Both the position numbers and the translations under genes were made by a program. This document shows positions 37,201-55,892 of a stretch of DNA of 64,000 nucleotides, piece by piece. This stretch comes from Macrostomum lignano (lineage: Eukaryota), in assembly GCA_002269645.1 (NCBI GenBank), contig NIVC01001402.1, positions 186,001 to 250,000 on the forward strand, given 5' to 3'. The notes under the pieces were generated by a model. It searched no databases. It was not told the DNA's origin and worked only from the letters and a program-made list of their open reading frames with translations. Numbering within the stretch: position 1 is the first letter of the stretch; every line of letters starts with the position of its first letter.

Positions 37201-40200
37201 ATCTCACCCAAGCCATCTCCAATCTCCCCCAAGCCATCTTCAATCTCCCCCAAGTCATCTCCAATCTCCCCCAAGCCATCTCCAATCTTACCAAAGTCAT
37301 CTCCAATCTCATCCATTTGCAGCCGATCTGGAGCGCAAGCTGGAGGAGAATTTCCGCAACCTGACGGAGATCGAGGAGTTCCTGCTGGTGACAAACTCCA
37401 GGGACCTGACCTCCTTGTCCTTCTTGGCCAACCTGCGGGTTGTGCACGGCAAGCATGTTGTTGACGATGCCACCAGAGCGGCCAGGTAAGCAGACAGAGA
37501 CTAGCAGGTGAGGCGCAGTGTGCCAGGCCAAGGAAGAGCAGAGCAAGTACGAGCGTATTTTGAGCTGCCCAGCTAAAGCCGCCTTTCCACAGCAAGGCCA
37601 ATTAGCCGGCCGTCAAAGCAGCTCGTTCTTGTGTCCCTGCCGGCCCATTGCAGCTGCGGGCAATTTTTGGAATGCCCCGCGTTTTCTGCCCTCCCCATCT
37701 TCGCCGTTGTTCAGAACTGCAGAATCCGCTTCGCGCTAATCACGAGCAGACACGGCCTTGCTTCTTTTGATTAGCGAGATTGCTGCTCCAAGGCTCAGCT
37801 GAGCCCCTTGCCTGTCCAACCTTTTTCTTGTTCGCTTGCAGTCTCTCCTCTCCATCCCCATTGCTTCCCTTGCAGGCCCACCATCAAGATTGAGCACACA
37901 GACTTCCTGCAGAGCTTGTGGAACACAACCGGCGGCAGGCGGGTCAGCGTGCCCCGCGGCAAGGTGCAGTTCTACATGAACCGCCGCCTCTGCTACAACC
38001 GGATTCAAACCTTCGTTAATGAGACTCTGGACGTGGCCGAGAAGGTTGGCCTGGGCCTTCGCTGTAGCTAATCACCTGTTCTGAATGTTTCTTGCAAGGC
38101 TCGGGTGAACAAAGATCTGTTCCCAGTGATAGTTGAATGACCCGGGTGAACAAAGATCTGTTCCCAGTGATAGTTGAATGACCCGGGTGAACAAAGATCT
38201 GTTCCCAGTGATAGTTGAAATGGCCCGGGTGAACAAAGATCTGTTCCCAGTGATAGTTGAATGACCCGGGTGAACAAAGATCTGTTCCCAGTGATAGTTG
38301 AAATGGCCCGGGTGAACAAAGATCTGTTCCCAGTGATAGTTGAATGACCCGGGTGAACAAAGATCTGTTCCCAGTGATAGTTGAATGACCCGGGTGAACA
38401 AAGATCTGTTCCCAGTGATAGTTGAATGACCCGGGTGAACAAAGATCTGTTCCCAGTGATAGTTGATTGGCCCGGGTGAACAAAGACCTGTTCCCAAGGA
38501 TAGTTGATTGGCCCGGGTGAACAAAGATCTGTTCCCAGTGATAGTTGAATGGCCCGGGTGAACAAAGACCTGTTCCCAAGGATAGTTGATTGGCCCGGGT
38601 GAACAAAGATCTGTTCCCAGTGATATTTGAATGACCCGGGTGAACAAAGATCTGTTCCCAGTGATAGTTGAAATGGCCCGGGTGAACAAAGATCTGTTCC
38701 CAGTGATAGTTGATTGGCCCGGGTGAACAAAATGCAGCTTGTTCTGCCCTGCCCAGGTGAACAAAGATCTGTTCCCAGTGATAGTTGATTGGCCCAGGTG
38801 AACAAAGACCTGTTCCCAAGGATAGTTTATTGGCCCACGTGAACAAAATGCTTGTTCTGCCCTGCCCAGGTGAACGAGCTCGAGGACCTGTCCCCGAAGA
38901 CCAACGGAGACCTTGCCTACTGCATCAACCGCACCTTCGACATCGTGGTGGGGCTGGTCTCGGCCAGCGGGGTCATCCTGCATTGGCCGGACCTGGTGGT
39001 CAGCGACCAGCGCTACGTACTGGGCTACTCCATCTACTACCGCCTGGTCGGCCCGGACGAGACCGTTCAGTACGCGGACCCGTCCACCTGCGAGATCCGG
39101 CAGTGGCAGACGACCTTCTCGCCCTGCGACAACGTCTATTCGCTGAACAAGCCGGAGCCGGACCCCACCGGCAAGGGGCCGCCGCCCAAGCCGCTGCCCA
39201 ACTCCTGCCATCTGCAGAACTGCTCGCAGTGCATCGGGGACTGTCAGAACCGGCTGGGGAAGCGGCAGTGTCAGAAATATGTGCATGTGAGTGATGAATG
39301 GTTGGCTTTGAGTGAGTAACTTGAGTAATAATACTCCTTGAGTAATAACTTTAAGAACGAGTTATTTAGTGAGATAGTGAGGAAGAGTCAGTCAGCTAGG
39401 TAGTCAGTGACTTAGTCAGTTAATCAGTCAGTCAGTCAGTGAGTTAGTCAGTCAGTCAGTGAGTTAGTCAGTCAGTCAGTCAGTTAGTGAGTTAGTCATT
39501 TAGTCAGTCAGTCAGTCAGTGAGTTAGTCAGTTATTCAGTTAGTCAGTCTAATAGTCAGTCAGTCAGTCAGTCAGTGAGTTAGTCAGTTATTCAGTTAGT
39601 CAGTCAGTCAGTCAGTTAGTCAGTGAGTCAGTGAGTCAGTGAGTTAGTCAGAGTCAGTCGGATAGTCAGAGTTATTTTGCAGCGATATTCTTCCGACAGC
39701 TAATAAATTGGCTGAGCTGGGTCAGGGGCGGCAGCGGTCGCGCGCAGGCGACAGTTCGATGATTGAATTCGGGGTTTGAAACTCCAGCCCTGAGGTGTCG
39801 GTAGACATTGCGTGTGAGGAATTCCCGGATGGGTTTGATGAAGAGAATTTTCAGTTGCAGCAGGCGGGGATTTCAGAGGCTGCAAACGGAAGAGACGGGG
39901 TGGAACAGCACGGAACTGAATTAAAATGCAGAGGCAGTGGAAATTGAAATAAAACATGATTAAACAGAGGACAGGACGACTGACTAACAAGGAGTTAAAA
40001 AGTCATGCAAAAAGAAAATTGATTATTGCTATGCGATTGCACGGGTGCAGAAGTGGGATTACACCATTTTACCTCCTATTTTGAACAAAGTCGTGTTCAA
40101 AAGAAACAAGCAGAACTTCAATTCAAACACTTTAAGAAATACAATAACAGCCCTTGCGGAAGTTCAATTCAAACAAAGTCCCTTTCTATTGAAACAGAAG

Positions 40201-43200
40201 AACTTCAATTCAGACTGTCTGTGGCCAAAACTGTCCTTGAGTGACGCGCATGCGCGAACTTGAAATTCAAAAGAAACAAAGTCACATTCTATTTCGACAG
40301 AGATTTTCGGACATAGGTACAAGTACATTTTTAGTACATTAATCTAACTTTTTTGTTTTCCCTGTACTGCATAACTGTACAATCGTTGCACAACAAGAAA
40401 CGATATGAATGCTGGAAGATCAGATTGAAGAAGACGATGAATTGCTGGAAGAAGATGGAATCAGTGAATTTGAAGCAGAATTCGATGAAGATATCATGGA
40501 ACAGCAGCCTTGGCAGTGCGCTATTGTTTAAGCAACAGTGACAGAGACCGTATCATCAGGGCTGCTGATTGTTGGGGATGACTTGTGGAACTGGCGCGCC
40601 AACTTGGAGTCAAGAGGTCAACAGCGAACACGATCGTGAGGTCAGGGGGAGCAGAAAAGCAGCCTACAAGATTCCGGACACCATTCAGGTCAAGTGGCTT
40701 CCACCATACAGTCCATTTTTGATTCCTGTGGAGAACTCAATCTCCTGTTGGAAGGACACCCTGAAGAGAAAACTGGTAGCAGACCAGCAAAATTTCATCA
40801 CTCCGATAGCTGAGCAGCACGGGAATCAGTCAATGGCGTCCTATCGGCGAGACATTCTGTACAGCATGGTGGACAAAACCATTGGCTGCATCTCTGTGGA
40901 CAAATGCACTGAGTGGTTCAACCATGTGTTTACATACGTACCTCGCTGCGTTGGTGGACAGGCAATTGATGGTTAGATGTCTCAAGTTGGCCAGCTGACA
41001 CTGTCTTGTTCCTGTTTTTCATTCTACTCTTATGTTCGTCGATATGCTGTGTTTTATCCCTTTGTCGAAATAGAATGTGACTTTGTTTCTTTTGAATTTG
41101 AAATCTGCGCATGCGCGTCATTCGGGGACAATTTTGGCCACAGACAGTCTGAATTGAAGTTCTTCTGTTTCAATAGAAAGGGACTTTGTTTGAATTGAAC
41201 TTCCGCAAGGGCTGTTATTGTATTTCTTAAAGTGTTTGAATTGAAGTTCTGCTTGTTTCTTTTGAACACGACTTTGTTCAAAATAGGAGGTAAAATGGTG
41301 TAGTTAGTGCTATAGTAGTAGATAATACTTATCAAGATATGTTTGCCAAAGTAATGGAGCTTTTGTCTGTGGTAGCAAGGCTGGCACAGCAGCAAGTGGG
41401 CTGCAAAAAGCGATAATACACTGCACGGGTGCATGGGCAGCAGGCAGGCAGGCTGACAGGGAGACAGGCAGACAGACAGGCTGACAGGGAGACAGGCAGA
41501 CAGGCAGGCTGACAGGCAGACAGACAGACTGACAGGGAGACAGGCAGACAGACAGGCTGACAGGGAGACAGACAGACAGACAGGCTGACAGGGAGACAGG
41601 CAGACAGACAGGCTGACAGGGAGACAGGCAGGCAGACAGACAGGGAGACAGACAGACAGACAGGCTGACAGGGAGACAGACAGGCGGATCAGCAGCTGAT
41701 TTGTCCCCTCTCTCCCCAGGATCTCCGGCCGGCCAGCCGCTACGCTCTCTTCGTGATGCCGCAGATACTGCTGGAGCGGCAGCAGGAGTACGGCAGCAAG
41801 AGCCGCATCATCTACGTAGAGACGCTGCCGACCCAGCCGTCGCCGCCTCACCAGTTCGACGGCAAGGCGGCATCCAGCGACGAGATTCGGCTGGAGTGGC
41901 GGCCGCCGCTGGTGCCGAACGGGCGGGTGACTCACTACCTGCTGTGGGTGAAGGAGATCCAGTCCAAGCAGGCCAACTACGCGCTTAAGGACTACTGCGA
42001 GGAGAAGCGGCGCGGCCCGCTGGATTTGTTGGTCTCAGCTAAGCTGCCGCTGCTCAACAAGGGCGACTCGCAGTTGCTGGAGCCCGATGGCCGCAGTGGC
42101 AGCAGCGGCGGCGGTCGGAGCTTCCCGGCCAACTCCAGCCTGTCCTGCCGGCGCCACTGCCAGTGCGAGCAGCGGCCGGACCTGAAGCGGCGGGAGAAGA
42201 TCATCTACTTTGAAGACACCCTGCTGCGCATCATGTTTCGGAGGAGGTGAGGGCTTACTTTTCATGTGCCGTATTTCAGGTACTCGTAGCAGCAAGCAGC
42301 CATTTTTCTGCTCTCTTTGTGGCAATGAGGCTAATGTCTGTCTACGTTTTAGCCAGCTGTGTGAATGCTGACAGTAGAACTTCTAGCAGTGTGAGTGCTT
42401 ACAGAGAGCTTTTAGCTGTGAGTGCTTACAGAGTGCTGTTAGCTGTAGGAGTGCTTACAGAGTGCTGTTAGCTGTAGGAGTGCTTACAGAGAGCTGTTAG
42501 CTATGTGAGTGCTTACAGAGAGCTGTTAGCTGTAGGAGTGCTTACAGAGTGCTGTTAGCTGTGTGAGTGCTTTCAGAGAGCTGTTAGCTGTGAGTGCTTA
42601 CAGAGTGCTGTTAGCTGTGTGAATGCTGCTAGCTGTGTGAGTGCGTACAGAGTGCTGTTAGCTGTAGGAGTGCTTACAGAGTGCTGTTAGCTGTGTGAAT
42701 TCTGCTGGCTGTTTGAGTCCTGCTGTTAAAGTTAGTTTCGGGTTACAAAAGGCAAAATGCCGCCGACTGCCGAGCTCGCAGATTTAAGCCGGAGCTCTTT
42801 TTGTTTGAATAATTTTAGCTCACAAATTCAGCTTGAAAATGCACTCCGCTAGCAGAGATTAAGGCTCGGGCAGCTGTTTGAAGTGAAAGCATCTCAATTA
42901 TAAGCTTTGCAACTACTCCCATGGCTTTCCCTTGGGGGCTTCCTCTGACTTCCTGAGCCTGCAGTGCGCTGCCTGCCCGACCATCCACGGACAGCTCGAG
43001 CTCGCGCGGGCTGCGGGGACGGGCGGAGCGGGAAATAGGAGCCCACGGGGTTTTCAGTTAGACAGAGGGTAGTACTTGAGAAAGTAATTCCTATCGAATT
43101 CACGTGCGATAGGAACCCCCCCAATGCCCATATTCGGTATATTTTCTATATATCAATCAGTTAATGGAAACTTCACTGACGCCCTTCCTGACAATCCTGA

Positions 43201-46102
43201 CACCCCGACCATCCTGACACCCTGGCCATCCTGACACCCTGGCCATCCTGACACCCTGGCCATCCTGACACCCTGGCCATCCTGACACCCTGGCCATCCT
43301 GACACCCTGGCTATCCTGACACCCTGACCATCTTGACACCCTGGCCATGCTGACAACCTGGCTATCCTGACACCCTGGCCATCATGACACCCTGGCCATC
43401 CTGACACCCTGGCTATCCTGACACCCTGACCATCTTGACACCCTGGCCATCCTGACACCCTGACCATCCTGACACCCGGGCCATCCTGACACCCTGGCCA
43501 TCCTGACACCCTGGCCATCCTGACACCCTGGCTATCCTGACACCCTGACCATTCTGACACCCAGGCCATCCTGACCATCCTGACACCCTGGCCATCCTGA
43601 CACCCTGGCTATCCTGACACCCTGACCATCTTGACACCCTGGCCATGCTGACAACCTGGCTATCCTGACACCCTGGCCATCATGACACCCTGGCCATCCT
43701 GACACCCTGGCTATCCTGACACCCTGACCATCTTGACACCCTGGCCATCCTGACACCCTGACCATCCTGACACCCGGGCCATCCTGACACCCTGGCCATC
43801 CTGACACCCTGGCCATCCTGACACCCTGGCCATCCTGACACCCTGGCTATCCTGACACCCTGACCATTCTGACACCCAGGCCATCCTGACCATCCTGACA
43901 CCCTGGCCATCCTGACACCCTGACCATCCTGACACCCTGGCCATCCTGACACCCTGACCATCCTGACACCCTGGCCATCCTGACACCCTGGCTATCCTGA
44001 CACCCTGACCATTCTGACACCCAGGCCATCCTGACCATCCTGACACCCTGGCTATCCTGACACCCTGACCATCTTGACACCCTGGCCATCCTGACACCCT
44101 GACCATCCTGACACCCTGGCCATCCTGACACCCTGGCCATCCTGACACCCTGGCCATCCTGACACCCTGGCTATCCTGACACCCTGACCATTCTGACACC
44201 CAGGCCATCCTGACCATCCTGACACCCTGGGTATCCTGACACCCTGGCTATCCTGAACACGCTGATTATCCTGACGCTTGGGTCGTCCCAAAATTCTGAC
44301 TTCCTTTTTCACATCTGCGGATGTCATCTTACGCTATTTTTAAGCCTGGCTCTTCCTGCCTGACAGACTTTCGCACAGACTAATTAATGCAGCCAATGAA
44401 AAAACTCGAGCTTGCGGCTATCTCTGCTGCCCCTAATTGTGCAAGCCTGCTGGCTGTCTGGGTGCGGACGCACTGGTGCAAATGCACTTTTAGTCTTTCT
44501 GCCATTCCGCAGCCATGCATCCGAGAGAATTACCGTGTTTGCTTCCTGGCAACTCGTGTCTGCTTAACCATAGGAAAACTTTATTTGCATTCCAACAGCA
44601 TGAACCTTATCATGCTTTCACCTACAACGTTACCGCCGCTTCTACCCGATTGCCCTTCTAGCCACCCCCCTTCTATCCAAAGCATCCCCACCCAGAGCCG
44701 AGCTCCGCCCGCCCACCCGCAGGCCCGAGTCAGACTCCATGCGAATTCTGCATCGTAACGCGACTCGCCGCTTTCGATTCGGCCGCCGCAACGCCTCTTC
44801 GCTGCTATCGTTTCCCGTGGGCACGGAGTCCCGCCTGGCCTCGCCCTCGGCCCTGCTGGACCCCCTGCTGCCCGATCCTGCGGACGCCACGCCGGCTCCG
44901 GTAGCCACCGTTGCGCCCACCACAGCGCCGAAAACGAACTGCCCGGAGCTGAAGTGCCACGAAGACATTGTGGAGGCCATCGCGCCTCCGCAGGACACTC
45001 GCGGCCTGGCCGATGGCTACACGGTGGTGCGAGGCACCCAGTACACAGTGACCAACCTGCGGCATTTCACCTCCTATGAGCTGATGGTGCGTGCCTCCCG
45101 CATTGCGGAGTATTGGGCTGGTTCAGGGTGGCTGAGATATCAAGGTTGGTGAGATGACAGAACCGTGCTGTACTGGCATTTTTTCCTCCCCCCGCAGCTG
45201 GTAGCGTGCCTGGACGAGTTCCAGCACCCGCAGTACAGCACCACCCTGCACCTGTGCTCGAACCCGGCTCGCATCATGCGCCGCACCCTGGCGCTGCCTG
45301 ACGCCGACGAAATCCCTGCCAGATCGCTGTCCGCCGAGCCGGTGCCTGCACCGTCGGGCTATTCAACAGACTTCCAGCTGCTGTGGCGGCAGCCGGACTC
45401 GCCGAATGGCGCAGTGATCTACTACGATGTGGAGTACAAGACCGACAGCCACCGCAGCTGGCAGTACCACTGCGTCTCCTTTCAGGAGTGGCTGAACCGC
45501 GGGCACCGGCACCAGGTGCGGCAGCCAGCGCAGCGCCAGTCTTTGGCCGGGGCTGCCAACGGCAGCAGCAGTTCGGCGTCCATGCAGCAGCTGATCGGCG
45601 GCACCCTGCTGAAGTCGGTGCCGGAGGGCGACTACCAGGTGCGGGTGCGGGCCGTGTCGCTGTTCCAGCCTGGTCGGTGGAGCCTCCCGGTCCCCATGAG
45701 GGTCCGCCGGCGCCCCGGCCGCCTCACCGCAGACGCGATTGCCGGGGTTTTGCTGGTTGCCATGCTGTTGCTAGGCGCCTTGGTGGTTATCATCGCCTGG
45801 GTCACCTACCGCCGGATCAACCGGGAGAAGACGGTGGTCAACGAGAACCCGGACTACTGGAGCTACACCTACGAGCCTGACGAGTGGGAGGTGCCCCGCG
45901 ACCAGGTGACCTACAGCACCGCCGATCGCCTCGGCACCGGCTCCTTCGGCAGGGTCTACCGCGGCCTCGTGCGCTCGCTGAACACCCCGGCTGCGCGCTA
46001 CATCCGCCAGTCTGAGGACGTCCCTGTGGCGGTCAAGAGCGTCAACGACAAGGCCACCATGCGGGAGAGACACGAGTTTCTGCAGGTCAGAGTCTGGCTG
46101 TC

Positions 46103-46161
<59 letters not shown>

Positions 46162-47882
46162 GTCTGTCTTCCTGCTTAGCCAGTTGTCTGTCTATAACAC
46201 CAAGCCAAATTGAATCAACTCGCTTCGCAGGAGGCCACCCACATGAAGAAGTTCCGTCAGTGTGCCCACGTGGTCCGCTTGATCGGCGTGGTGTCGGAGA
46301 ACGTGCCGATTCTGGTGCTCATGGAGCTGATGGAGAACGGCGACCTCAAGACTTGTCTGCGCCAGATGCGCCCGGACACGGACGGGCCAGTCCTGCCCAT
46401 GTACAGCAGGGATCAGCTGGTGCTGTGGTGCGCGCAGATCGCTGACGGCATGTACTACCTGGAGACTAGAAAGTACATTCACCGGGACCTGGCAGCCAGG
46501 AACTGCATGGTCACGGCCGCCTTTACGGTCAAGATAGGCGGTAAGTCGCCTGCGGTAGCTGGGCCTTGGGCTAGAGTCTAAAATAATATCCGTGAGCCTC
46601 AGCCTGCAGAAAGTGCGGGATTTGAGATTTTGCTGCTGGAGCAACGGGTGAGCCGTGGGGCAGCAGCAGCCAGCTGAAGCATCAGGGGAGGGGCAGCAGC
46701 AGCCAGCTGAAGCATCAGGGGAGGGGCAGCAGCAGCCAGCTGAAGCATCAGGGGTGGGGCAGCAGCAGCCAGCTGAAGCATCAGGGGTGGGGCAACAGCA
46801 GCCAGCTGAAGCATCAGGGGTGGGGCAACAGCAGCCAGCTGAAGCATCAGGGGTGGGGCAGCAGCAGCCAGCTGAAGCATCAGGGGTGGGGCAGCAGCAG
46901 CCAGCTGAAGCATCAGGGCTGGGGCAGCAGCAGCCAGCTGAAGCATCAGGGGTGGGGCAACAGCAGCCAGCTGAAGCATCAGGGGTGGGGCAACAGCAGC
47001 CAGCTGAAGCATCAGGGGTGGGGCAACAGCAGCCAGCTGAAGCATCAGGGCTGGGGCAGCAGCAGCCAGCTGAAGCATCAGGGCTGGGGCAACAGCAGCC
47101 AGCTGAAGCATCAGGGGTGGGGCAGCAGCAGCCAGCTGAAGCATCAGGGCTGGGGCAGCAGCAGCCAGCTGAAGCATCAGGGGTGGGGCAACAGCAGCCA
47201 GCTGAAGCATCAGGGGTGGGGCAACAGCAGCCAGCTGAAGCATCAGGGCTGGAGCAACAGCAGGCTCCGCTGCAACATGTAGAGTTGCCACCCGCCCGCA
47301 GACTTCGGTATGACGCGGGACGTGTACTACTCGGACTACTACAAGAAGGAGGGTCAGGCGCCGCTGCCGGTCCGCTGGATGGCGCCGGAGTCGCTCCGGG
47401 ACGGCGTCTTCACCACCGCCTCAGATGTTTGGTCCTACGGCGTGGTGCTGTGGGAGATCGCCAGCCTGGCTTCCCAGCCGTTCAACGGGCGCAGCAACGA
47501 GGAGGTGCTGAACATGGTGAAGTCAGGCAAGACGCTGGAACCGCCAGAGGACTGCCCGGAGTTCCTGGCTGACCTCATGGCCCGCTGCTGGGCGCAGAAG
47601 CCGAAGCAGCGCTCATCATTTTCGGGCCTGCTGGCCTGCATCGATGAGCAGCCGGAGCTGCGGGCGGACTTCCGCCAGGCCAGCTGGTACCACAGCGGCC
47701 ACGCCGGCGACTCCGCCGTCACCGTCTGCCTGCCCGACCGCAGCTCCGCCGCTTCCTCGTGTAGCTCGGCCGCCACGCTGCCGGCCTGCACGACCTCCGC
47801 TGCTCTGAAGCAGGTGGAGGAGCAAATCCCCATGCTGCACCAGCAGTCGGTGCCCAACGCCTACGTGCACCTGCGGGCCTGA
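31208..47882 (+). CDS. INSR: Insulin/IGF-like peptide receptor tyrosine kinase, 11 exons
   Basis: Exons 31208-31280 (signal peptide), 31406-31901 (L1), 34861-35399 (furin-like Cys-rich), 37323-37485 and 37876-38044 (L2), 38870-39286, 41720-42246, 44696-45086 and 45198-46085 (FnIII, TM, NPDY, GTGSFG, VAVK), 46231-46540 (HRDLAARNC), 47302-47882 ([23 protein letters not shown]). All introns are GT-AG and phases are consistent. Confidence 0.95.
31889..33042. repeat. 24-bp minisatellite (TATGTGAACCAGTGAG(T/A)GCTCAGA), ~48 copies, spanning the INSR exon 2 donor
   Basis: ICEPVSAQ periodicity; the first unit overlaps the exon end TATGTGTACCA|GTGAGTGCTCAGA. Confidence 0.97.
34133..34825. repeat. 34-bp minisatellite (GCTCAGCCTGAGCATCCCAGGGAGAGG...), INSR intron 2
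   Basis: About 20 copies, each with a GCTCAG-C-CTGAGC palindrome; ends about 35 nt before the acceptor. Confidence 0.95.
35455..36265. repeat. 15-17-bp minisatellite (CCATCCATGAATC(T)CC), INSR intron 3
   Basis: Direct reading. Confidence 0.95.
36935..37315. repeat. 21-bp minisatellite (CCAAGCCATCTCCAATCTCAC) abutting the INSR exon 4 acceptor
   Basis: 7-aa periodic ORFs; the last unit runs into CATCCATTTGCAG. Confidence 0.9.
38100..38850. repeat. 41-42-bp minisatellite (GGGTGAACAAAGATCTGTTCCCAGTGATAGTTGAATGACCC), INSR intron 5
   Basis: Direct reading; includes a duplicated acceptor at 38733-38762. Confidence 0.95.
39380..39660. repeat. (TCAG)n-like microsatellite
   Basis: Direct reading. 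Confidence 0.9.
40062..41300 (+). mobile_element. Internally deleted Tc1/IS630-superfamily DNA transposon with 238-bp TIRs and TA target duplication
   Basis: Near-identical inverted repeats at 40062-40299 and 41063-41300, flanked by TA (40060-61 and 41301-02). Internal fragment 40569-40976 encodes [22 protein letters not shown] (the SPxLNPIE-type C-terminal DDE motif). No N-terminal DNA-binding region or first Asp residues are visible. Confidence 0.9.
41440..41685. repeat. (CAGA/GACA)n compound microsatellite upstream of the INSR exon 7 acceptor
   Basis: Direct reading. Confidence 0.9.
42380..42715. repeat. ~29-bp minisatellite (GAGTGCTTACAGAGTGCTGTTAGCTGT..), INSR intron 7
   Basis: Direct reading. 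Confidence 0.9.
43190..44265. repeat. 17-bp minisatellite (CCATCCTGACACCCTGG), INSR intron 7
   Basis: 17-aa (3 x 17 nt) periodicity in ORFs and direct reading. Confidence 0.95.
46088..46170. repeat. (TCTG)n microsatellite filling the short INSR intron 9
   Basis: Direct reading. Confidence 0.9.
46655..47260. repeat. 27-bp minisatellite (GGGGCAGCAGCAGCCAGCTGAAGCATC), INSR intron 10, which splits the DFG motif
   Basis: GQQQPAEAS periodicity; about 22 copies. Confidence 0.95.
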
Positions 47883-48944: not shown

Positions 48945-50835
48945 TCAGAAGCGCCTTTCCCGCTTCTGGTTGAATGAGCAGCCGCTGCCGCCGCTGGCCC
49001 GCTTGACGCCCTGCGCTACCAGCTGCAGGATGCCGCCGTGGCTTGTCGGCTGCCACTGCATCAGCTGCTGTGGCTGCTGCGGCGGCTGGCGTGGGGGCGG
49101 CGGCACAGCCTGCGGCACCTGCCGCCTGGCGAGGCTCACTTCGAGACCGTCGACACCATCAAGCTCGGCGACGGCGCGCAGCGCGTCCTCCCGCCGGCGG
49201 AAGCACACCAGGCCGAGGTCGTGAGTTCGAGTCACGCTGTCTAGTTGGCCGAACGAGGCGACCCGACGGCGCAGTTCAGCTTCCGTCACGGAGGGCTTTA
49301 GGTTGCGGATGAGCAGCAGGCGGAGCTGGTTGAGCGTCTCTCGGTCCTCCTGGTGGGCAGGTACGCAAGAAGTGTGGATGGACACCTGCGGGCCTCCTTG
49401 CTCTGCCTTTGCTGATCTCCACAACTACTTTTTCTATTAAACCAGGCCATGGAGTTCAAATCTTTTCTGCTCATCTATCCTATCTAGCCAGCTAGGTGGT
49501 ACTAGAAAACTTGTCTACTGTCAATGTATTCTGCTGAACAGTCGCTTAGACCGGCCCTATTAAAGCCGGTCTTCGGGGTGGGAATGGTTCTGTTCTATCC
49601 AAACTGCAGTAGCTTCAAATCACCTCTTCAACGGCGTCCGCCCAGTCCACACAGATGTCGCCGGCGCCGCCGCTGCAGTCGGCAAAGACGCACCTGCCAC
49701 GGTCCTTCACCAGCCGTTTTTTCGCCGCCGAGGCGTCGGCGTGGCTGGCGAATTCCAGGAAACAGAAGCCGCGGTTGCTCGCTGGCGACTGCGATGAGGC
49801 CGAAGGCACGTTTGATGAGGCAGCAGCGGCTGCGGCGTAGCAGACAACTCCAGTGAGACCGTTAAGACCAGCGGACTTGAATGCTGACCTGGACAGGTGG
49901 TGTACAACTACACTGGATTAACGGTGAGACAGACAGACGGACAGACAGACACTAACAGACAAACCTGATCTGTTCAACACTCAGCCGCTTCGGTAGGTTT
50001 CCAACCAGCAGCCGGCAGTTTGGCGCCATCGGCTCCACTTGCAGCGGCCGAGAGTCACTGAAGTCGCAGATGCGTCGGCCATTGAGCAGCTCGGCGGCGC
50101 GGATGGCATCGGCGGGGCTGGCAAAGAGGGCGAAGGCAAAGCCTTTGTTAAGGCCGCTGGTGGGTTCTGTGGGGATTCGCAGGTCGAACAGCGGCCCGGC
50201 CTCCTCCAGCAGCGGCACGAGCGAGTCCTCAAAAGCGTCGGGCGGCAGGCGGCTGATGAAGACCTCGCAACTTGGTGGCGGTGGCGGCTCGCGCTGACGG
50301 CCCGGCGGCGGCCCGTAGCGGCGCTGGCCTGCAGTGACCTCGTGGCTGAAGCCGGTGCGCTGCAGCAGCCGCTTCAGGGAGGCCTCGCTGGGGCCCTTGG
50401 AGGCGGACTGGGCCTGCGACGGTTAAGGTTTATGGTTGCTATGGAGACATCCTGTTCAGACCCACATGCCCCATAGCGGTTCTGCTTAGACTCACATTCC
50501 CCATAGCGGACTCTGCTCAGACTCACATTCCCCATAGCGGACTCTCGCCACGCCTTGAGCGCGCAGTTCAACGCGACGGTCCGCGCCTCGCCAGGCCGCA
50601 GGTCGTCGGCCGACTCCTCGAATTCCTTCAGCGCGCTGACCAGCGCGGGCTCCGGGAAGTCGGTCTCACTGACAGCGGCAAAAGTCTCACCGTCCAGCTC
50701 CGCCCAGGTCAGACGACCGGCCCGTAGCAGCTCAGCGAGGTGCCCGGCTGCCACGACCCCGACACCGCGCCCAGCCAACCGGGATTCGAAGTCGGCGGCT
50801 CCATCTTTGCCGCTTTTGTCCTCGGAGCTGCCCGA
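48945..50835 (-). CDS. SYNCRIP: hnRNP Q/R (SYNCRIP)-like RNA-binding protein: N-terminal helical domain plus 3 RRMs
   Basis: Exons 50835-50527, 50413-49965, 49888-49624, 49349-48945. Family motifs: KGPSEASLKRLLQRTG..VTAGQRRYG, FEDSLVPLLEEAGPLFDLR, GLNKGFAF, CRLLVGNLPK, SNRGFCFLEF, VDWAD, LLIRNL. The N-terminal helical domain (LAELLRAGRLTWAELD...) favours SYNCRIP/hnRNPR over A1CF/RBM47. Divergent, with no RGG tail and no in-frame ATG. Confidence 0.85.
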
Positions 50836-50924
50836 CTGGCGGTGCGGCCGGATTATTCAGCATAACAGTTCGATGCGCACAAATTAACGCATAGAATTCT
50901 ACTTGTGGCTATTCTGTTCTATTC

Positions 50925-52312
50925 ACATGGGGTCACTGACTCATACATCCCATTGGGGTCACTGACTCATACATCACATGGGGTCACTGACTCGTACACC
51001 CCATTGGGGTCACTGACTCGTACATCCCATTGGGGTCACTGACTCATACATCCCATTGGGGTCACTGACTCATACATCCCATTGGGGTCATTGACTCATA
51101 CATCACATGGGGTCACTGACTCATACATCACATGGGGTCACTGACTCGTACATCCCATTGGGGTCACTGACTCATACATCACATGGGGTCACTGACTCGT
51201 ACATCCCATTGGGGTCACTGACTCATACATCACATGGGGTCACTGACTCGTACATCCCATTGGGGTCACTGACTCATACATCACATGGTGTCACTGACTC
51301 ATACATCCCATTGGGGTCACTGAATCAAACACATCACACTGGGGTCACTGACTCAAACACATCACAATGGGGTCACTGACTCAAACACATCCCAATGGGG
51401 TCACTTACTCAAATACATCACACTGGGGTCACTGACTAAAACACATCCCAATGGGGTCACTTACTCAAATACATCACAATGGGGTCACTGACTAAAACAC
51501 ATCACAATGGGGTCACTTACTCAAATACATCACAATGGGGTCACTGACTAAAACACATCACAATGGGGTCACTGACTCAGATACATCACATGGGGTCACT
51601 GACTCAAATACATCACAATGGGGTCACTGACTCAGATACATCACATGGGGTCACTGACTCAAATGCATCACATGGGGTCACTGACTCAAATACATCACAA
51701 TGGGGTCACTGACTCAAACACATCCCAATGGGGTCACTTACTCAAATACATCACAATGGGGTCACTGACTAAAACACATCCCAATGGGGTCACTTACTCA
51801 AATACATCACAATGGGGTCACTGACTAAAACACATCCCAATGGGGTCACTTACTCAAATACATCACAATGGGGTCACTGACTAAAACACATCACAATGGG
51901 GTCACTTACTCAAATACATCACAATGGGGTCACTGACTAAAACACATCACAATGGGGTCACTGACTCAGATACATCACATGGGGTCACTGACTCAAATAC
52001 ATCACAATGGGGTCACTGACTCAGATACATCACATGGGGTCACTGACTCAAATGCATCACATGGGGTCACTGACTCAAATACATCACAATGGGGTCACTG
52101 ACTCAAACACATCCCAATGGGGTCACTTACTCAAATACATCACAATGGGGTCACTGACTAAAACACATCCCAATGGGGTCACTTACTCAAATACATCACA
52201 ATGGGGTCACTGACTAAAACACATCACAATGGGGTCACTTACTCAAATACATCACAATGGGGTCATTGACTAAAACACATCACAATAGGGTCACTTACTC
52301 AAATACATCACA
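50925..52312. repeat. 26-27-bp minisatellite (ATGGGGTCACTGACTCA(T/A)ACATCAC) with a 389-bp higher-order duplication
   Basis: Direct reading; identical 68-aa ORFs at 51618 and 52007. Confidence 0.95.
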
Positions 52313-52939: not shown

Positions 52940-53768
52940 TCGTAATCTGTCAGACCCAGTCTCATTAATCTGTCAGACCCAGCTTCATAATCTGTCAGAT
53001 CCAGTCTCATAAATATGTTAGACCCAGCCTCGTCTCATATCTGTCAGACCCAGCCTCATAAATATGTCAGACCCAGCCTCATCAATCTGTCAGACCCAGC
53101 CTCATCAATCTGTCAGACCCAGCCTCATAAATATGTCAGACCCAGTCTCATCAATCTTTCAGACCCAGCCTCATCAATCTGTCAGACCCAGCCTCATAAA
53201 TATGTCAGACCCAGCCTCATCAATCTGTCAGACCCAGCCTCATAAATATGTCAGACCCAGCCTCATCAATCTGTCAGATCCAGCCTCATCAATCTGTCAG
53301 ATCCAGCCTCATCAATCTCAGACCCAGTCTCATCAATCTGTCAGACCCAGCCTCATCAATCTGTCAGATCCAGCCTCATCAATCTGTCAGACCCAGCCTC
53401 ATAAATATGTCAGACCCAGCCTCATCAATCTGTCAGACCCAGCCTCATCAATCTGTCAGACCCAGCCTCATCAATCTGTCAGATCCAGCCTCATCAATCT
53501 CAGACCCAGTCTCATCAATCTGTCAGACCCAGCCTCATCAATCTCAGACCCAGTCTCATCAATCTGTCAGACCCAGCCTCATCAATCTGTCAGACCCAGC
53601 CTCATCAATCTGTCAGATCCAGCCTCATCAATCTGTCAGACCCAGCCTCATAAATATGTCAGACCCAGCCTCATAAATATGTCAGACCCAGCCTCATCAA
53701 TCTGTCAGATCCAGCCTCATCAATCTGTCAGACCCAGCCTCATCAATCTGTCAGACCCAGCCTCATCG
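52940..53768. repeat. ~23-bp minisatellite (TCTGTCAGACCCAGCCTCATCAA) directly downstream of the GID8 stop
   Basis: Direct reading. Confidence 0.95.
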
Positions 53769-53797
53769 ATTTGTCGATAATTCGATCCCGCAGGCGC

Positions 53798-54692
53798 TCA
53801 GACCAAGCTGCCCCCGCCAGACGATGGAGCGCCGTCAAATCCAGCGCCCGCCAAGTCGGTGAGGCGCGGGAATCGAACTCCGGCCGACGCCAGGCGGTCC
53901 TGTGACCACAGCAGCAGACGGAGCAGGTAGTCGAGCCGGCAACGCGCCGCAGCGTCTCTGCCATCCCCATCGGCCTCTGCATCGGCCTCGGCGTCGCGTC
54001 CGGCGATGGCCGCGTCCAGCAGGCCGGCCAGTTGCCGCCGCTGCCCCTGTCCGAGCCAGTGGCCAAACGCTGCAGACTCGGCCGGCCGCTCAAAGGCCAA
54101 TAGTGCCATGGCCTCCTCCAGATCGGACAGCCGCTCCGGTCGCGCTTCTGCCAGCGGCGCCAGGCGCTGCTGCGCCAAATCCAGCGCCTCAGAGGGCCGG
54201 CCAACCCTCACCAGCTCCAGCAACTGCTGCAACCGCAGGCGGAACTCCAGCCCAGGCCGGGAAGCCAGCAGGCCCGGCCTCGCCAATTCCAGCAGCTCCA
54301 CCGCCTCGTCAATGCGGCCCGACTGGAAGAGGGGCGAAAAAATTAGAAAATGACTGTTAATGTACTGCTGGGCAGAATGCTCAATGAGAGCGAGAAATGT
54401 GCTCGCTAAACAGCAGCGGGTGTCAGTGACAATGGACGGTGGGAGCCACAGAGCCAGCGATCACCTGCACAGCCTCCCGTATCCGGCAGCGCAGTTCAGC
54501 ATGGGGAACAGCCGCAGTCTCGGGAGTCGGCAGGCCGCGGGCTTCGCGCTGAAACGCCTCGGCAGCCTCCAGGTGGCCCTGGTGCCGCAGGTAGTCCAGT
54601 AGCAGGCGGTTCAAGTCCTGCTCAGGGGCGAGTTGGCGCTCAGGCAGAGAGGCCAGCCACTGGTCCGGCCGGCAGTCCCTGCCCGAGGCCAT
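53798..54692 (-). CDS. GID8: GID8/TWA1 CTLH E3-ligase subunit (LisH-CTLH-CRA), 2 exons: 54692-54465, 54322-53798
   Basis: LisH motif DLNRLLLDYLRHQGHLEAAEAFQREA; CTLH motif IREAVQSGRIDEAVELL; FRLRLQQLLELVR; LEEAMALLAFERP; LLRLLLWSQDRL..FPRLTDL. GT-AG intron in phase 0. Confidence 0.92.
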
Positions 54693-55892
54693 GGAGGAGG
54701 CCGCAGGGGCCAGAGGAGTTGCGGCCGATGACGGAGCTGTTGACTCGGCCGGAGCCAAGTGTCGAATGCCCAGGCGAATTCGCTGCAGGTGAGAATGCGA
54801 TCTGGGGTATGGATGTTGCCTCCAAGACTTTGCCACAGCAACTCCGGACTCAGAGGAACACTAAGTAGGTAGCACAACTATCCAGCAACTTTATAGCTTA
54901 GACATGAATCCAGACTCAAATTCACACTGCCAGCAAACGAGCCATAAAATGCAACTGGTGTACAATACGATGAAATCCACAACTGATCAAAATGGGCTTC
55001 ATTTGATGGCAGTGTGAACGAGCCTTTAAGAAACTTTTTGGACTTCCTGGTCTAGGATAGGCCTGTTGCTTTTAGTTTACCTGGATTGTGTGCTAATTAT
55101 GGCTCAAAGAAATTGAGAGAAGAATTAAAACATTCTCAACTAAAAAACACTAAGACTAGTTATACAAGCATATAATACACACTTGTAATTGAATGAGAGG
55201 AGGCCTGTGGGGTCATGCCTCTCCCAATATTTTTTGGTAGTAGCTCGTACATGTCAATTTTTAAGGAAGTCTAGTATTTTTATTATAATGCAGATGGGAC
55301 ATTTCAATGTTTGCCTTATTTTGCCAAACCTGCTGACCCACTACTTTTTGAAGCATTCTTGTACAATTGTACAATATTTGGCTATTAAAAATAAAAAAGA
55401 GATAATTAGCTCTTTTGCTCATTGCTAATGAATTTATTGCATCTCTTAGGTTATGATAATAGGAATTAAAAATCCTGAACTTATTATATTATGACATAAA
55501 AATGATTGTTTCATAAAAAGGGTTCCTTAATTACAAATATAAATTAAATATATTATATCAAAAATAAAATACATTCTAAAATTTATTGATGCTGATATTG
55601 ATTTTTTCATATTATGCCATAGCAACCACACTGCCTTCAATAAAAATTGAATAGGCCTATATATAGCCAAGATATAAGAATCCTAATGATATAATCTACA
55701 AGACAAATGCAAGATATAATTATTTTTATATTAAAAATATGTACATTTAAATTAATAAATTCTTTTATTTAGCTAAAACAATGTCAAAAGCAATAAAAAA
55801 GAATTAGAAATTAAAACCAAGTTTTAAGTAAACTTATTATATAAATACCTAAGGTAATAATCTAAAACATAGTATCAAGTCAATAATATATT

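Follow-up and report, generated by a model that had tools for sequence, protein, structure and literature searches.

In flatworms, the supply of a start codon by the spliced leader (SL) is an already known mechanism and not a new one. According to the summary of Cheng et al. (2006) in PMC9851317, the AUG of the Schistosoma mansoni SL is in frame in 28% of the mRNAs that undergo trans-splicing, and more than 40 cDNAs depend on it for initiation. Macrostomum lignano possesses a single 35-nt SL that ends in ATG (...TTGCATG) (PMC8629364) and is trans-spliced onto transcripts of 30–39% of the genes (PMC8629364, PMC5730564), and the ATG of the Macrostomum SL was previously flagged as a likely start codon (PMC10468722). 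A full-text literature search for the Mlig gene identifiers used below returned no match, and these identifiers are not among the rows listed in the supplementary tables of PMC5816591 and PMC5173321, which carry {TRANSSPLICED} flags.

The M. lignano SYNCRIP-like gene described here resembles the flatworm mRNAs that initiate at the 3'-terminal AUG of the SL in that the leader has AUG at its 3' end, the acceptor opens the recipient exon in phase 0, and no in-frame genomic AUG precedes the conserved N-terminal residues in that exon. Because of this phase and this lack of an in-frame AUG, the SL AUG would restore the full-length conserved protein. The gene differs from the known cases in three respects: (i) the host is a free-living macrostomorph; (ii) the case is described from sequence and gene models; and (iii) the acceptor also has an annotated in-frame cis partner with its own ATG. 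Acceptors common to cis- and trans-splicing are widespread in flatworms (PMC12582326). As in the shared acceptors of Calvelo et al. (2025; PMC12582326), whose data come from parasitic species, one 3' splice site here could plausibly receive the SL and has an annotated donor in cis. The cis donor at our locus lies in a coding exon of the upstream gene, and the cis product would therefore be an in-frame fusion protein and more than a 5'UTR variant.

The locus is also similar to the operons of M. lignano (Wudarski et al. 2017, PMC5730564; Ustyantsev and Berezikov 2021, PMC8629364): the adjacent same-strand genes g1 and g2 are annotated as parts of one transcription unit, the spacer is inflated by satellites, with only ~740 nt of non-repeat DNA, and a CTGCAG| acceptor marks the exact start of the upstream gene. 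In contrast to those operons, trans-splicing of the downstream gene is a prediction here, its CGCCAG acceptor does not have the T of the enriched [T/C]TNCAG motif, and the repeat-adjusted spacer is well above the ~100-nt mode for trans-spliced gene pairs.

The SYNCRIP-like gene and its N-terminal domain

The window, a 64,000-nt stretch of DNA, contains on its minus strand a SYNCRIP-like gene that GenBank lists as Mlig002446.g2 with the label "partial". The flatworm origin on which the first-pass annotation depended was borne out: over 7.1 kb, the window matches M. lignano scaffold NIVC01001402.1 with 100% identity, and the SYNCRIP-like protein is 100% identical to M. lignano proteins, the spliced product matching both A0A1I8HY62 and PAA68354.1. 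Exon 1 (50835–50527) comprises 103 codons and encodes an hnRNP Q/R-type N-terminal domain. Exon 2 (50413–49965) encodes a linker and RRM1; in the spliced model, RRM2 is in exon 3 (49888–49624; also covered by BLASTP), and exon 4 (49349–48945) encodes RRM3 and a Q/P-rich tail ending at the stop TGA (48947–48945). The end of exon 1 lies in a 31-bp tandem triplication (50545–50452) that copies the last 15 nt of the exon together with the GT donor, and only the donor of the first copy (50527|50526) fits the annotated protein.

The best database relatives of the protein are hnRNP Q/R. BLASTP revealed 35% identity over ~410 residues to insect hnRNP Q/R with all three RRMs covered, and Pfam detected RRM_1 (E=7e-28), the three RRMs being in the hnRNP Q/R arrangement. 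The order of an N-terminal helical domain followed by three RRMs is that of the SYNCRIP/HNRNPR family. The M. lignano protein differs from the family as follows: it does not have the RGG/Tyr-rich C-terminal region, in place of which it carries a short P/Q-rich tail that is devoid of RGG repeats and ends ...NQKRERRF; the Pfam acidic-domain model PF18360 finds no match in it even at E<=1; and its gene exists in at least three near-identical copies in the genome.

The BLASTP alignment to an hnRNP Q/R homologue begins at residue 15, and the N-terminal domains of 14 homologues were combined into a profile, against which residues 14–98 score 26.3 bits, compared with 10.9 bits for the best of 1000 shuffles. 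Given this homology, translation must start within ~13 codons of the acceptor that opens exon 1. The 14-residue lead-in that an SL AUG would provide is similar in length to that of the homologues (~21 residues). Comparison of exon 1 with its paralogues revealed 5 synonymous and 4 non-synonymous changes, where ~1:3 would be expected under neutrality, which points to constraint. Judging from these comparisons, the coding sequence ahead of codon 102 appears to be real.

The acceptor and the reading frame around it

The acceptor CCGCCAG|TCG at 50836|50835, with its AG at 50837–50836 (CCGCACCGCCAG|TCG), marks the beginning of the first coding exon. Since this is the sole AG in the stretch, the exon begins at T 50835 in phase 0; the exon sequence 3' of the acceptor is TCGGGCAGCTCCGAGG (also given as TCGGGCAGCTCC). 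That this C-rich AG is a phase-0 acceptor had been proposed from the letters alone, and it is the exact site used by a transcript-based GenBank model at a paralogous locus (junction ...REAVQ|SGSSEDK). A second AG 8 nt downstream (50829–50828) was considered as an SL site and rejected, because the SL AUG would then fall out of frame. The acceptor hexamer CGCCAG is not the most enriched trans-splice motif, [T/C]TNCAG, which counts against SL use of the site, although that motif is itself present at only 44% of sites. Between the acceptor and the nearest satellite lies a unique 85-nt stretch (50922–50838), which would be the 3' end of an outron or, in the cis isoform, of an intron.

Seven codons 5' of the acceptor, the SYNCRIP-like frame is closed by a TGA (50859–50857). 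From this TGA the frame continues ATA ATC CGG CCG CAC CGC CAG up to the acceptor and TCG GGC AGC TCC GAG GAC beyond it, and translates as *IIRPHRQ|SGSSEDKSGKDGAADFESRLAGRG. The first-pass annotation had reported no in-frame ATG between the TGA and the conserved domain and had placed both nearby ATGs out of frame, and our analysis agrees on each point. The ATG at 50892 is in frame, but it precedes the TGA and runs into a stop after 2 codons; the earliest genomic ATG that could serve this frame is codon 102 (50535–50533), past the conserved N-terminal domain (residues 14–98). Of the out-of-frame ATGs, that at 50863–50861 begins a 43-codon open reading frame in the outron and is removed by splicing at 50836, and that at 50804–50802, in the third frame within exon 1, has a strong context (AAGATGG) and a 31-codon open reading frame. 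The SYNCRIP-like gene is without a usable genomic start codon of its own.

The ATG at 50863 could be in frame in reality if a 1-nt assembly indel between 50860 and 50836 masked it, as had been considered earlier; the scaffold comes from a long-read assembly, and one indel would yield MLNNPAAPP.... However, the interval from −68 to +77 relative to the acceptor does not differ among three paralogous copies that were assembled independently, and the ATG, TGA and frame relations are the same in all of them, which makes an assembly error unlikely. Moreover, the stretch has no homopolymer longer than 2 nt, and the transcript-based model splices exactly at 50836. We regard such an error as hardly credible.

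Translation might alternatively proceed with no upstream AUG, starting at Met102 (50535), possibly by re-initiation after the 31-codon open reading frame, or at a near-cognate codon (ATA or ATC at 50856–50851, or the TTG in DFESRL), with the N-terminal domain being untranslated or decaying. Consistent with this, the acidic domain of hnRNP Q goes undetected by Pfam, the SL AUG has a weak context (UGCAUGU), and the strong out-of-frame AUG 34 nt further on would divert scanning ribosomes; the last two facts count against initiation at the leader, and AUG 50804 would capture the ribosomes that skip the SL AUG. On the other hand, the profile score of the N-terminal domain and the constraint on exon 1 speak for its translation, the frame is open for 108 codons 5' of Met102, the in-frame near-cognate codons are of the weakest types or lie within the domain, and an unspliced leader would meet the out-of-frame AUG 50863 first. 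A start at Met102 or at a near-cognate codon is thus improbable in our estimation.

The upstream GID8-like gene and its probable cis junction

Upstream of the SYNCRIP-like gene (50835–48945) and adjacent to it on the minus strand is a GID8/TWA1-like gene (54782–53798), in which Pfam detected LisH (1.8e-07) and CTLH (1.6e-21) and both exons of which were spanned by a tblastn search with human GID8. Exon 1 (54782–54465) contains the LisH and a conserved ATG (54692–54690). Its 5' end, where PAA68355.1 (Mlig002446.g1) starts, is located directly after CTGCAG| (54784–54783), an SL-type acceptor, and its 3' end is in phase 0 (...GTG CAG|gtgatc; 3'-end sequence GAGGCTGTGCAG, also given as GCTGTGCAG). 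Exon 2 (54322–53798), with the CTLH/CRA domain and the stop codon (53800–53798), follows the acceptor cttccag|TCGGGC and begins with TCGGGCCGCATTGACG.

No gene is present between the GID8-like and SYNCRIP-like genes in the gene lists of the loci L002 and L003. The 2962-nt spacer of the window harbors a 23-bp satellite (53775–52944), which starts 23 nt past the GID8 stop and has 36 copies here and 11–12 in the paralogues, and a 28-bp satellite (52312–50923) with 51 copies here and 15 in the paralogues. Subtraction of these repeats (832 and 1390 nt) leaves ~740 nt, compared with 735 and 739 nt in the paralogues, which is below the published 1-kb threshold for the repeat-adjusted spacer of an operon (PMC8629364). 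The two genes are named Mlig002446g1/g2 in GenBank, and Mlig033866g1/g2 at a paralogue. Such names denote one transcription unit that was cut by the TBONE pipeline on SL and/or poly(A) evidence (PMC5730564); they show a single transcription unit and not which of the two types of evidence cut it. A two-gene transcription unit is the typical setting for SL trans-splicing (PMC5730564).

At a paralogue (L001), the protein PAA58449.1 (Mlig021072.g1, 581 aa) joins GID8 exon 1 to exactly the SYNCRIP acceptor. The splice-site sequence of this paralogue is that of the window, where this exon, its donor and the acceptor likewise occur in a matching frame. The upstream ATG-bearing cis exon that had been named earlier as an alternative therefore has a counterpart in GID8 exon 1 with its ATG 54692; this exon is nevertheless part of the upstream gene, and separate annotations are given for the two genes at the other two loci. 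Were this junction the source of the start codon, GID8 exon 1 would be spliced over 3.6 kb to 50836, the genes would share their first exon through alternative splicing, and the main product would be a LisH–hnRNP Q fusion of 551 aa from the ATG. The 10-nt sequence ccag|TCGGGC occurs, with identical phase, at each of the two acceptors that are open to the donor, and flatworms commonly use SL acceptors in cis (PMC12582326). However, at two of the three loci the same pipeline kept g1 and g2 apart with no joining exon despite identical splice-site sequence, and the junction is therefore evidently that of a minor isoform. Furthermore, the proximal acceptor of GID8 exon 2 is only 142 nt away from the donor and intact in all copies, the fusion needs read-through of the GID8 3' end, and hnRNP Q/R homologues do not have a LisH and begin ~20 residues before the N-terminal domain. 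We consider it unlikely that the fusion is the main product; as a coexisting cis-spliced isoform, it is probable.

Proposed initiation at the leader AUG

The M. lignano SL has the sequence CGGTCTCTTACTGCGAAGACTCAATTTATTGCATG and the 3' end UUAUUGCAUG (also written ATTTATTGCATG), and the earlier statement that flatworm leaders end in AUG holds for this species, as the published 35-nt SL demonstrates (PMC8629364). A search with the SL sequence found no SL gene in the window, and Rfam gave no match over the whole window. Joining the SL in silico to the acceptor produced an uninterrupted 476-codon open reading frame, MSGSSEDK..., in accordance with the M-S-G-S-S-E-D that had been read from the SL AUG plus TCG GGC. 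After the SL AUG, the first AUG encountered is out of frame, and codon 102 provides the first one in frame.

We propose that Mlig002446.g2 is the downstream gene of a two-gene, same-strand unit with the GID8/TWA1-like g1, and that its pre-mRNA would lack a 5' exon belonging to the gene itself, so that coding sequence would begin with the exon that opens at 50836|50835. The 35-nt SL (...UUAUUGCAUG) would be trans-spliced onto this site, which would discard the outron with its in-frame UGA and out-of-frame AUG 50863 and set the terminal AUG of the leader in phase 0, directly 5' of UCG GGC. Initiation at this AUG would produce MSGSSEDK..., 476 codons that include the full N-terminal domain. We infer, with moderate confidence, that the leader is spliced to this acceptor and that the SYNCRIP-like protein most likely starts at the AUG of the leader. 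The donor of GID8 exon 1 probably also uses the 50836 acceptor in cis at a lower level, which would give an in-frame LisH–SYNCRIP fusion from the genomic ATG 54692. A more speculative and rather doubtful extension is that 50836 is a dual-use operon site, at which competition between cis- and trans-splicing would set the output of one unit as GID8, the SYNCRIP-like protein and the LisH–hnRNP Q fusion.

The public gene models were compared with this proposal. The GenBank g1 models start exactly at their own acceptor in all copies, whereas the g2 models at two of the three loci have ragged starts 21 and 27 nt downstream of the g2 acceptor and no upstream exon. This difference suggests that the g2 site lacked a strong SL peak in the 2017 pipeline. 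Models ending 21–27 nt past the acceptor are nevertheless expected with the mapping mode used (PMC5730564), because SL-bearing reads cannot map end to end, whereas transcription from a nearby upstream start would extend the coverage past the acceptor, unlike the g2 models. Such a start, or an unannotated 5' exon of the gene itself, could lie in the 3-kb spacer, for example as an ATG-bearing exon in the 630-nt unique block 52943–52313 that is cis-spliced to 50836. The acceptor must have some partner, the spacer is long, its satellites hamper read mapping and assembly, and transcription units of M. lignano break in repeat-rich spacers (PMC8629364). However, any such exon is absent from both independent annotations (ML2/UniProt and Mlig_3_7/GenBank) at the loci returned, and supporting homology was not found; we regard this origin of the start codon as very unlikely.

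The UniProt models of both genes begin with Q (QSGSS... and QRIRLG...), the CAG codon of the acceptor, in the position that the SL AUG would occupy. We did not accept this residue as proving SL addition: it fits SL-bearing transcripts, but GID8 exon 1 likewise has CAG at its 3' end, and a truncated cis-spliced transcript would therefore also give the Q. Exact protein look-ups of MSGSS... (476 aa), SGSS... (475 aa), the Met-started fusion and GID8 preceded by M returned no entry. Protein searches with full-length and low-complexity-masked queries, aimed at transcript-derived proteins such as those from Logan assemblies of Macrostomum RNA-seq, found nothing beyond the M. lignano cluster and insect hnRNP Q/R. 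A 138-aa N-terminal query gave no match and missed even the identical UniProt entry, which we read as a limit of the word index. The only close relative in the representative search (P0010) was discarded as a junk 1403-aa model, in which GID8, a frameshifted SYNCRIP and antisense receptor-kinase sequence are fused.

If the leader AUG is the start, the SYNCRIP-like gene would illustrate cleanly, through a conserved domain, a mechanism for which experimental proof comes only from Schistosoma, and would do so in a flatworm that is free-living and amenable to transgenesis; the "partial" label in both public M. lignano annotations would also be accounted for. In that case, annotation pipelines that trim the leader together with its ATG will systematically truncate or mislabel such genes. 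In addition, the cis junction to the GID8 coding exon provides a concrete case for competition between cis- and trans-splicing within a flatworm operon.

Identity and reading frame of the SYNCRIP-like gene

The SYNCRIP-like gene (Mlig002446.g2, hereafter g2) occupies four minus-strand exons (50835–50527, 50413–49965, 49888–49624, and 49349–48945) that encode 475 codons plus a stop. Its product shows 100% identity with M. lignano A0A1I8HY62 and, over the shared length, with GenBank PAA68354.1 (BOX15_Mlig002446g2, "partial"). The flatworm host assumed in the first-pass annotation was borne out, as 7.1 kb of the window matched scaffold NIVC01001402.1 (assembly GCA_002269645.1) at 100% identity. 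Pfam searches of the protein found RRM domains and no match to the acidic-domain model, and BLASTP aligned it with insect hnRNP Q/R from residue 15 (35% identity, ~410 residues). A 31-bp tandem triplication (50452–50545) repeats the GT donor of exon 1 along with the final 15 nt of that exon, giving three candidate donors spaced 31 nt apart, of which the second and third would shift the frame.

A TGA (50859–50857, minus strand) lies in frame with the long ORF and is followed by ATA ATC CGG CCG CAC CGC CAG/TCG GGC AGC..., that is, IIRPHRQ/SGSSEDKSGKDGAADFESRLAGRG. The two nearby ATGs occupy the other two frames and open ORFs of 43 codons (from 50863) and 31 codons (from 50804); the earliest usable in-frame genomic ATG is codon 102 (50535). 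The sole AG of the stretch (50837–50836) gives an exon beginning at 50835 in phase 0. This layout agrees to the base with the one first described.

In a profile built from the N-termini of 14 homologues, residues 14–98 scored 26.3 bits, compared with 10.9 for the top shuffle among 1000, and exon 1 carried 5 synonymous and 4 non-synonymous differences relative to its paralogues. Together with the homologue alignment, these results indicate a true coding function for the ~100 codons that precede the earliest in-frame ATG in the genome. The profile score of this region weighs against initiation from Met102 or a non-AUG codon, which is improbable. The absence of a start codon is genuine and not an artefact of annotation. 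A 1-nt assembly error concealing an in-frame start, which had been offered as an alternative, is very unlikely, because three independent assemblies are concordant and the stretch around the acceptor has no homopolymer longer than 2 nt: two paralogous copies of the locus (L001 on NIVC01002373.1 and L003 on NIVC01000868.1) were identical to the window from −68 to +77 nt around the acceptor, with the ATG, TGA, and frame relations unchanged. An unannotated 5' exon is also improbable. Each of these three explanations is less likely than a start codon from the spliced leader (SL) or from the cis route described below.

The spliced leader as a candidate start-codon donor

M. lignano has a single 35-nt SL, CGGTCTCTTACTGCGAAGACTCAATTTATTGCATG (PMC8629364), carried by 30–39% of its genes (PMC8629364, PMC5730564). 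As summarised in PMC9851317, work on Schistosoma (Cheng et al. 2006) established that flatworm SLs end in an AUG and that this AUG can initiate translation; such initiation is also covered by PMC12582326, and PMC10468722 names the ATG of the Macrostomum SL as a probable start codon. When the SL was joined in silico at 50835, its terminal AUG opened an uninterrupted 476-codon ORF, MSGSSEDK..., reproducing the M-S-G-S-S-E-D predicted from SL-AUG plus TCG GGC. The lead-in from the SL AUG to the conserved domain is 14 residues, and homologue lead-ins are of similar length. The SL would be trans-spliced at 50835 and its AUG would start the protein; this is the likeliest explanation and probably the route used.

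Two observations favour SL use. At two loci, the g2 models include no exon further 5' and begin 21–27 nt inside exon 1. Reads were mapped end-to-end in the GenBank annotation pipeline (PMC5730564), under which such ends are expected if SL bases kept the 5'-most reads from mapping; had transcription begun shortly 5' of the acceptor, coverage should instead extend past it. The first residue in the older UniProt/ML2 models of g2 and of the upstream gene (g1) is Q, encoded by the acceptor CAG, which is where the SL AUG would sit. Other observations count against SL use. Protein searches and exact protein look-ups, including the MSGSS... form, retrieved no SL-tagged sequence for the SYNCRIP-like acceptor. 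The 5' starts of g2 are ragged, whereas g1 starts exactly at its acceptor, a contrast suggesting that the pipeline had registered no strong SL peak for g2. The SYNCRIP-like acceptor, CGCCAG, is missing the T of [T/C]TNCAG, the motif published for trans-splice sites. The SL AUG also sits in a weak context and is followed by a strong AUG in another frame.

The upstream GID8/TWA1-like gene and a possible cis route

The same strand carries, 3 kb upstream, a complete GID8/TWA1-like gene with LisH and CTLH/CRA domains (exons 54782–54465 and 54322–53798, minus strand). Its GenBank name is BOX15_Mlig002446g1, and the g1/g2 naming implies that the authors' pipeline first assembled the pair into a single transcription unit and then separated the two genes, guided by SL and/or poly(A) evidence (PMC5730564). 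The g1 model begins right after CTGCAG/, which fits the published trans-splice motif. The SL AUG would be in frame at this acceptor too (54692–54784, minus strand), where it would prepend 31 codons (MRIRLGIRHLAPAESTAPSSAATPLAPAASS), with no intervening stop, to the conserved Met at 54692.

The GID8–SYNCRIP spacer is 2962 nt, of which 2222 nt are two satellites, one of 28 bp (50923–52312; 51 copies here, 15 in two paralogous loci) and one of 23 bp (52944–53775; 36 copies here, 11–12 in two paralogous loci). The 23-mer array starts 23 nt past the GID8 stop codon and therefore lies in the 3'UTR. Satellite copy numbers vary among paralogues, the non-repeat spacer is ~740 nt in 3/3 copies, and this repeat-adjusted length is below the 1-kb operon threshold of M. 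lignano (PMC8629364).

GenBank PAA58449.1 (Mlig021072.g1, 581 aa, from L001) splices GID8 exon 1 straight onto the SYNCRIP acceptor (...AELRCRIREAVQ/SGSSEDK...). This exon is found in the window at 100% protein-level identity and terminates in GTG CAG/gt in phase 0, and an in-frame fusion from the genomic ATG at 54692 is possible. This is the ATG-bearing upstream cis exon that the first-pass annotation had named as counter-evidence, but the L001 model is not decisive: the exon is part of the adjacent gene; all copies preserve an intact proximal acceptor for GID8 exon 2, only 142 nt off; at the remaining two loci, this pipeline retained no such junction despite identical splice-site sequence; and cis use is frequent at flatworm SL acceptors (PMC12582326). 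Splicing of GID8 exon 1 to 50836 could be the main source of the start codon, although we consider this rather unlikely; a cis-spliced fusion isoform probably coexists with the SL route.

The GID8 exon 2 and SYNCRIP exon 1 acceptors (54318–54326 and 50831–50839, minus strand) have in common the 10-nt ccag/TCGGGC in the same phase, and both can pair with the donor of GID8 exon 1. The match may be coincidental, serve as a dual-splicing cue, or cause short-overhang reads to be mis-assigned. A gene for an insulin-receptor-like receptor tyrosine kinase (~38945–47882, plus strand; Recep_L, furin-like, fn3, and kinase domains) converges on the SYNCRIP-like gene and ends ~1 kb from the stop codon of the latter, with a ~42-bp tandem array in an intron (46660–47270) and a (GACA)n run in its region (~46110–46180). 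The ML2 annotation (P0001, P0161, and P0010) includes a 1403-aa artefact that fuses GID8, frameshifted SYNCRIP, and antisense kinase.

Initiation at an SL AUG is a mechanism already known in flatworms, and the SYNCRIP-like gene would be a new instance of it, not a new kind; competition between cis and trans splicing would be a possibly interesting twist at this locus.
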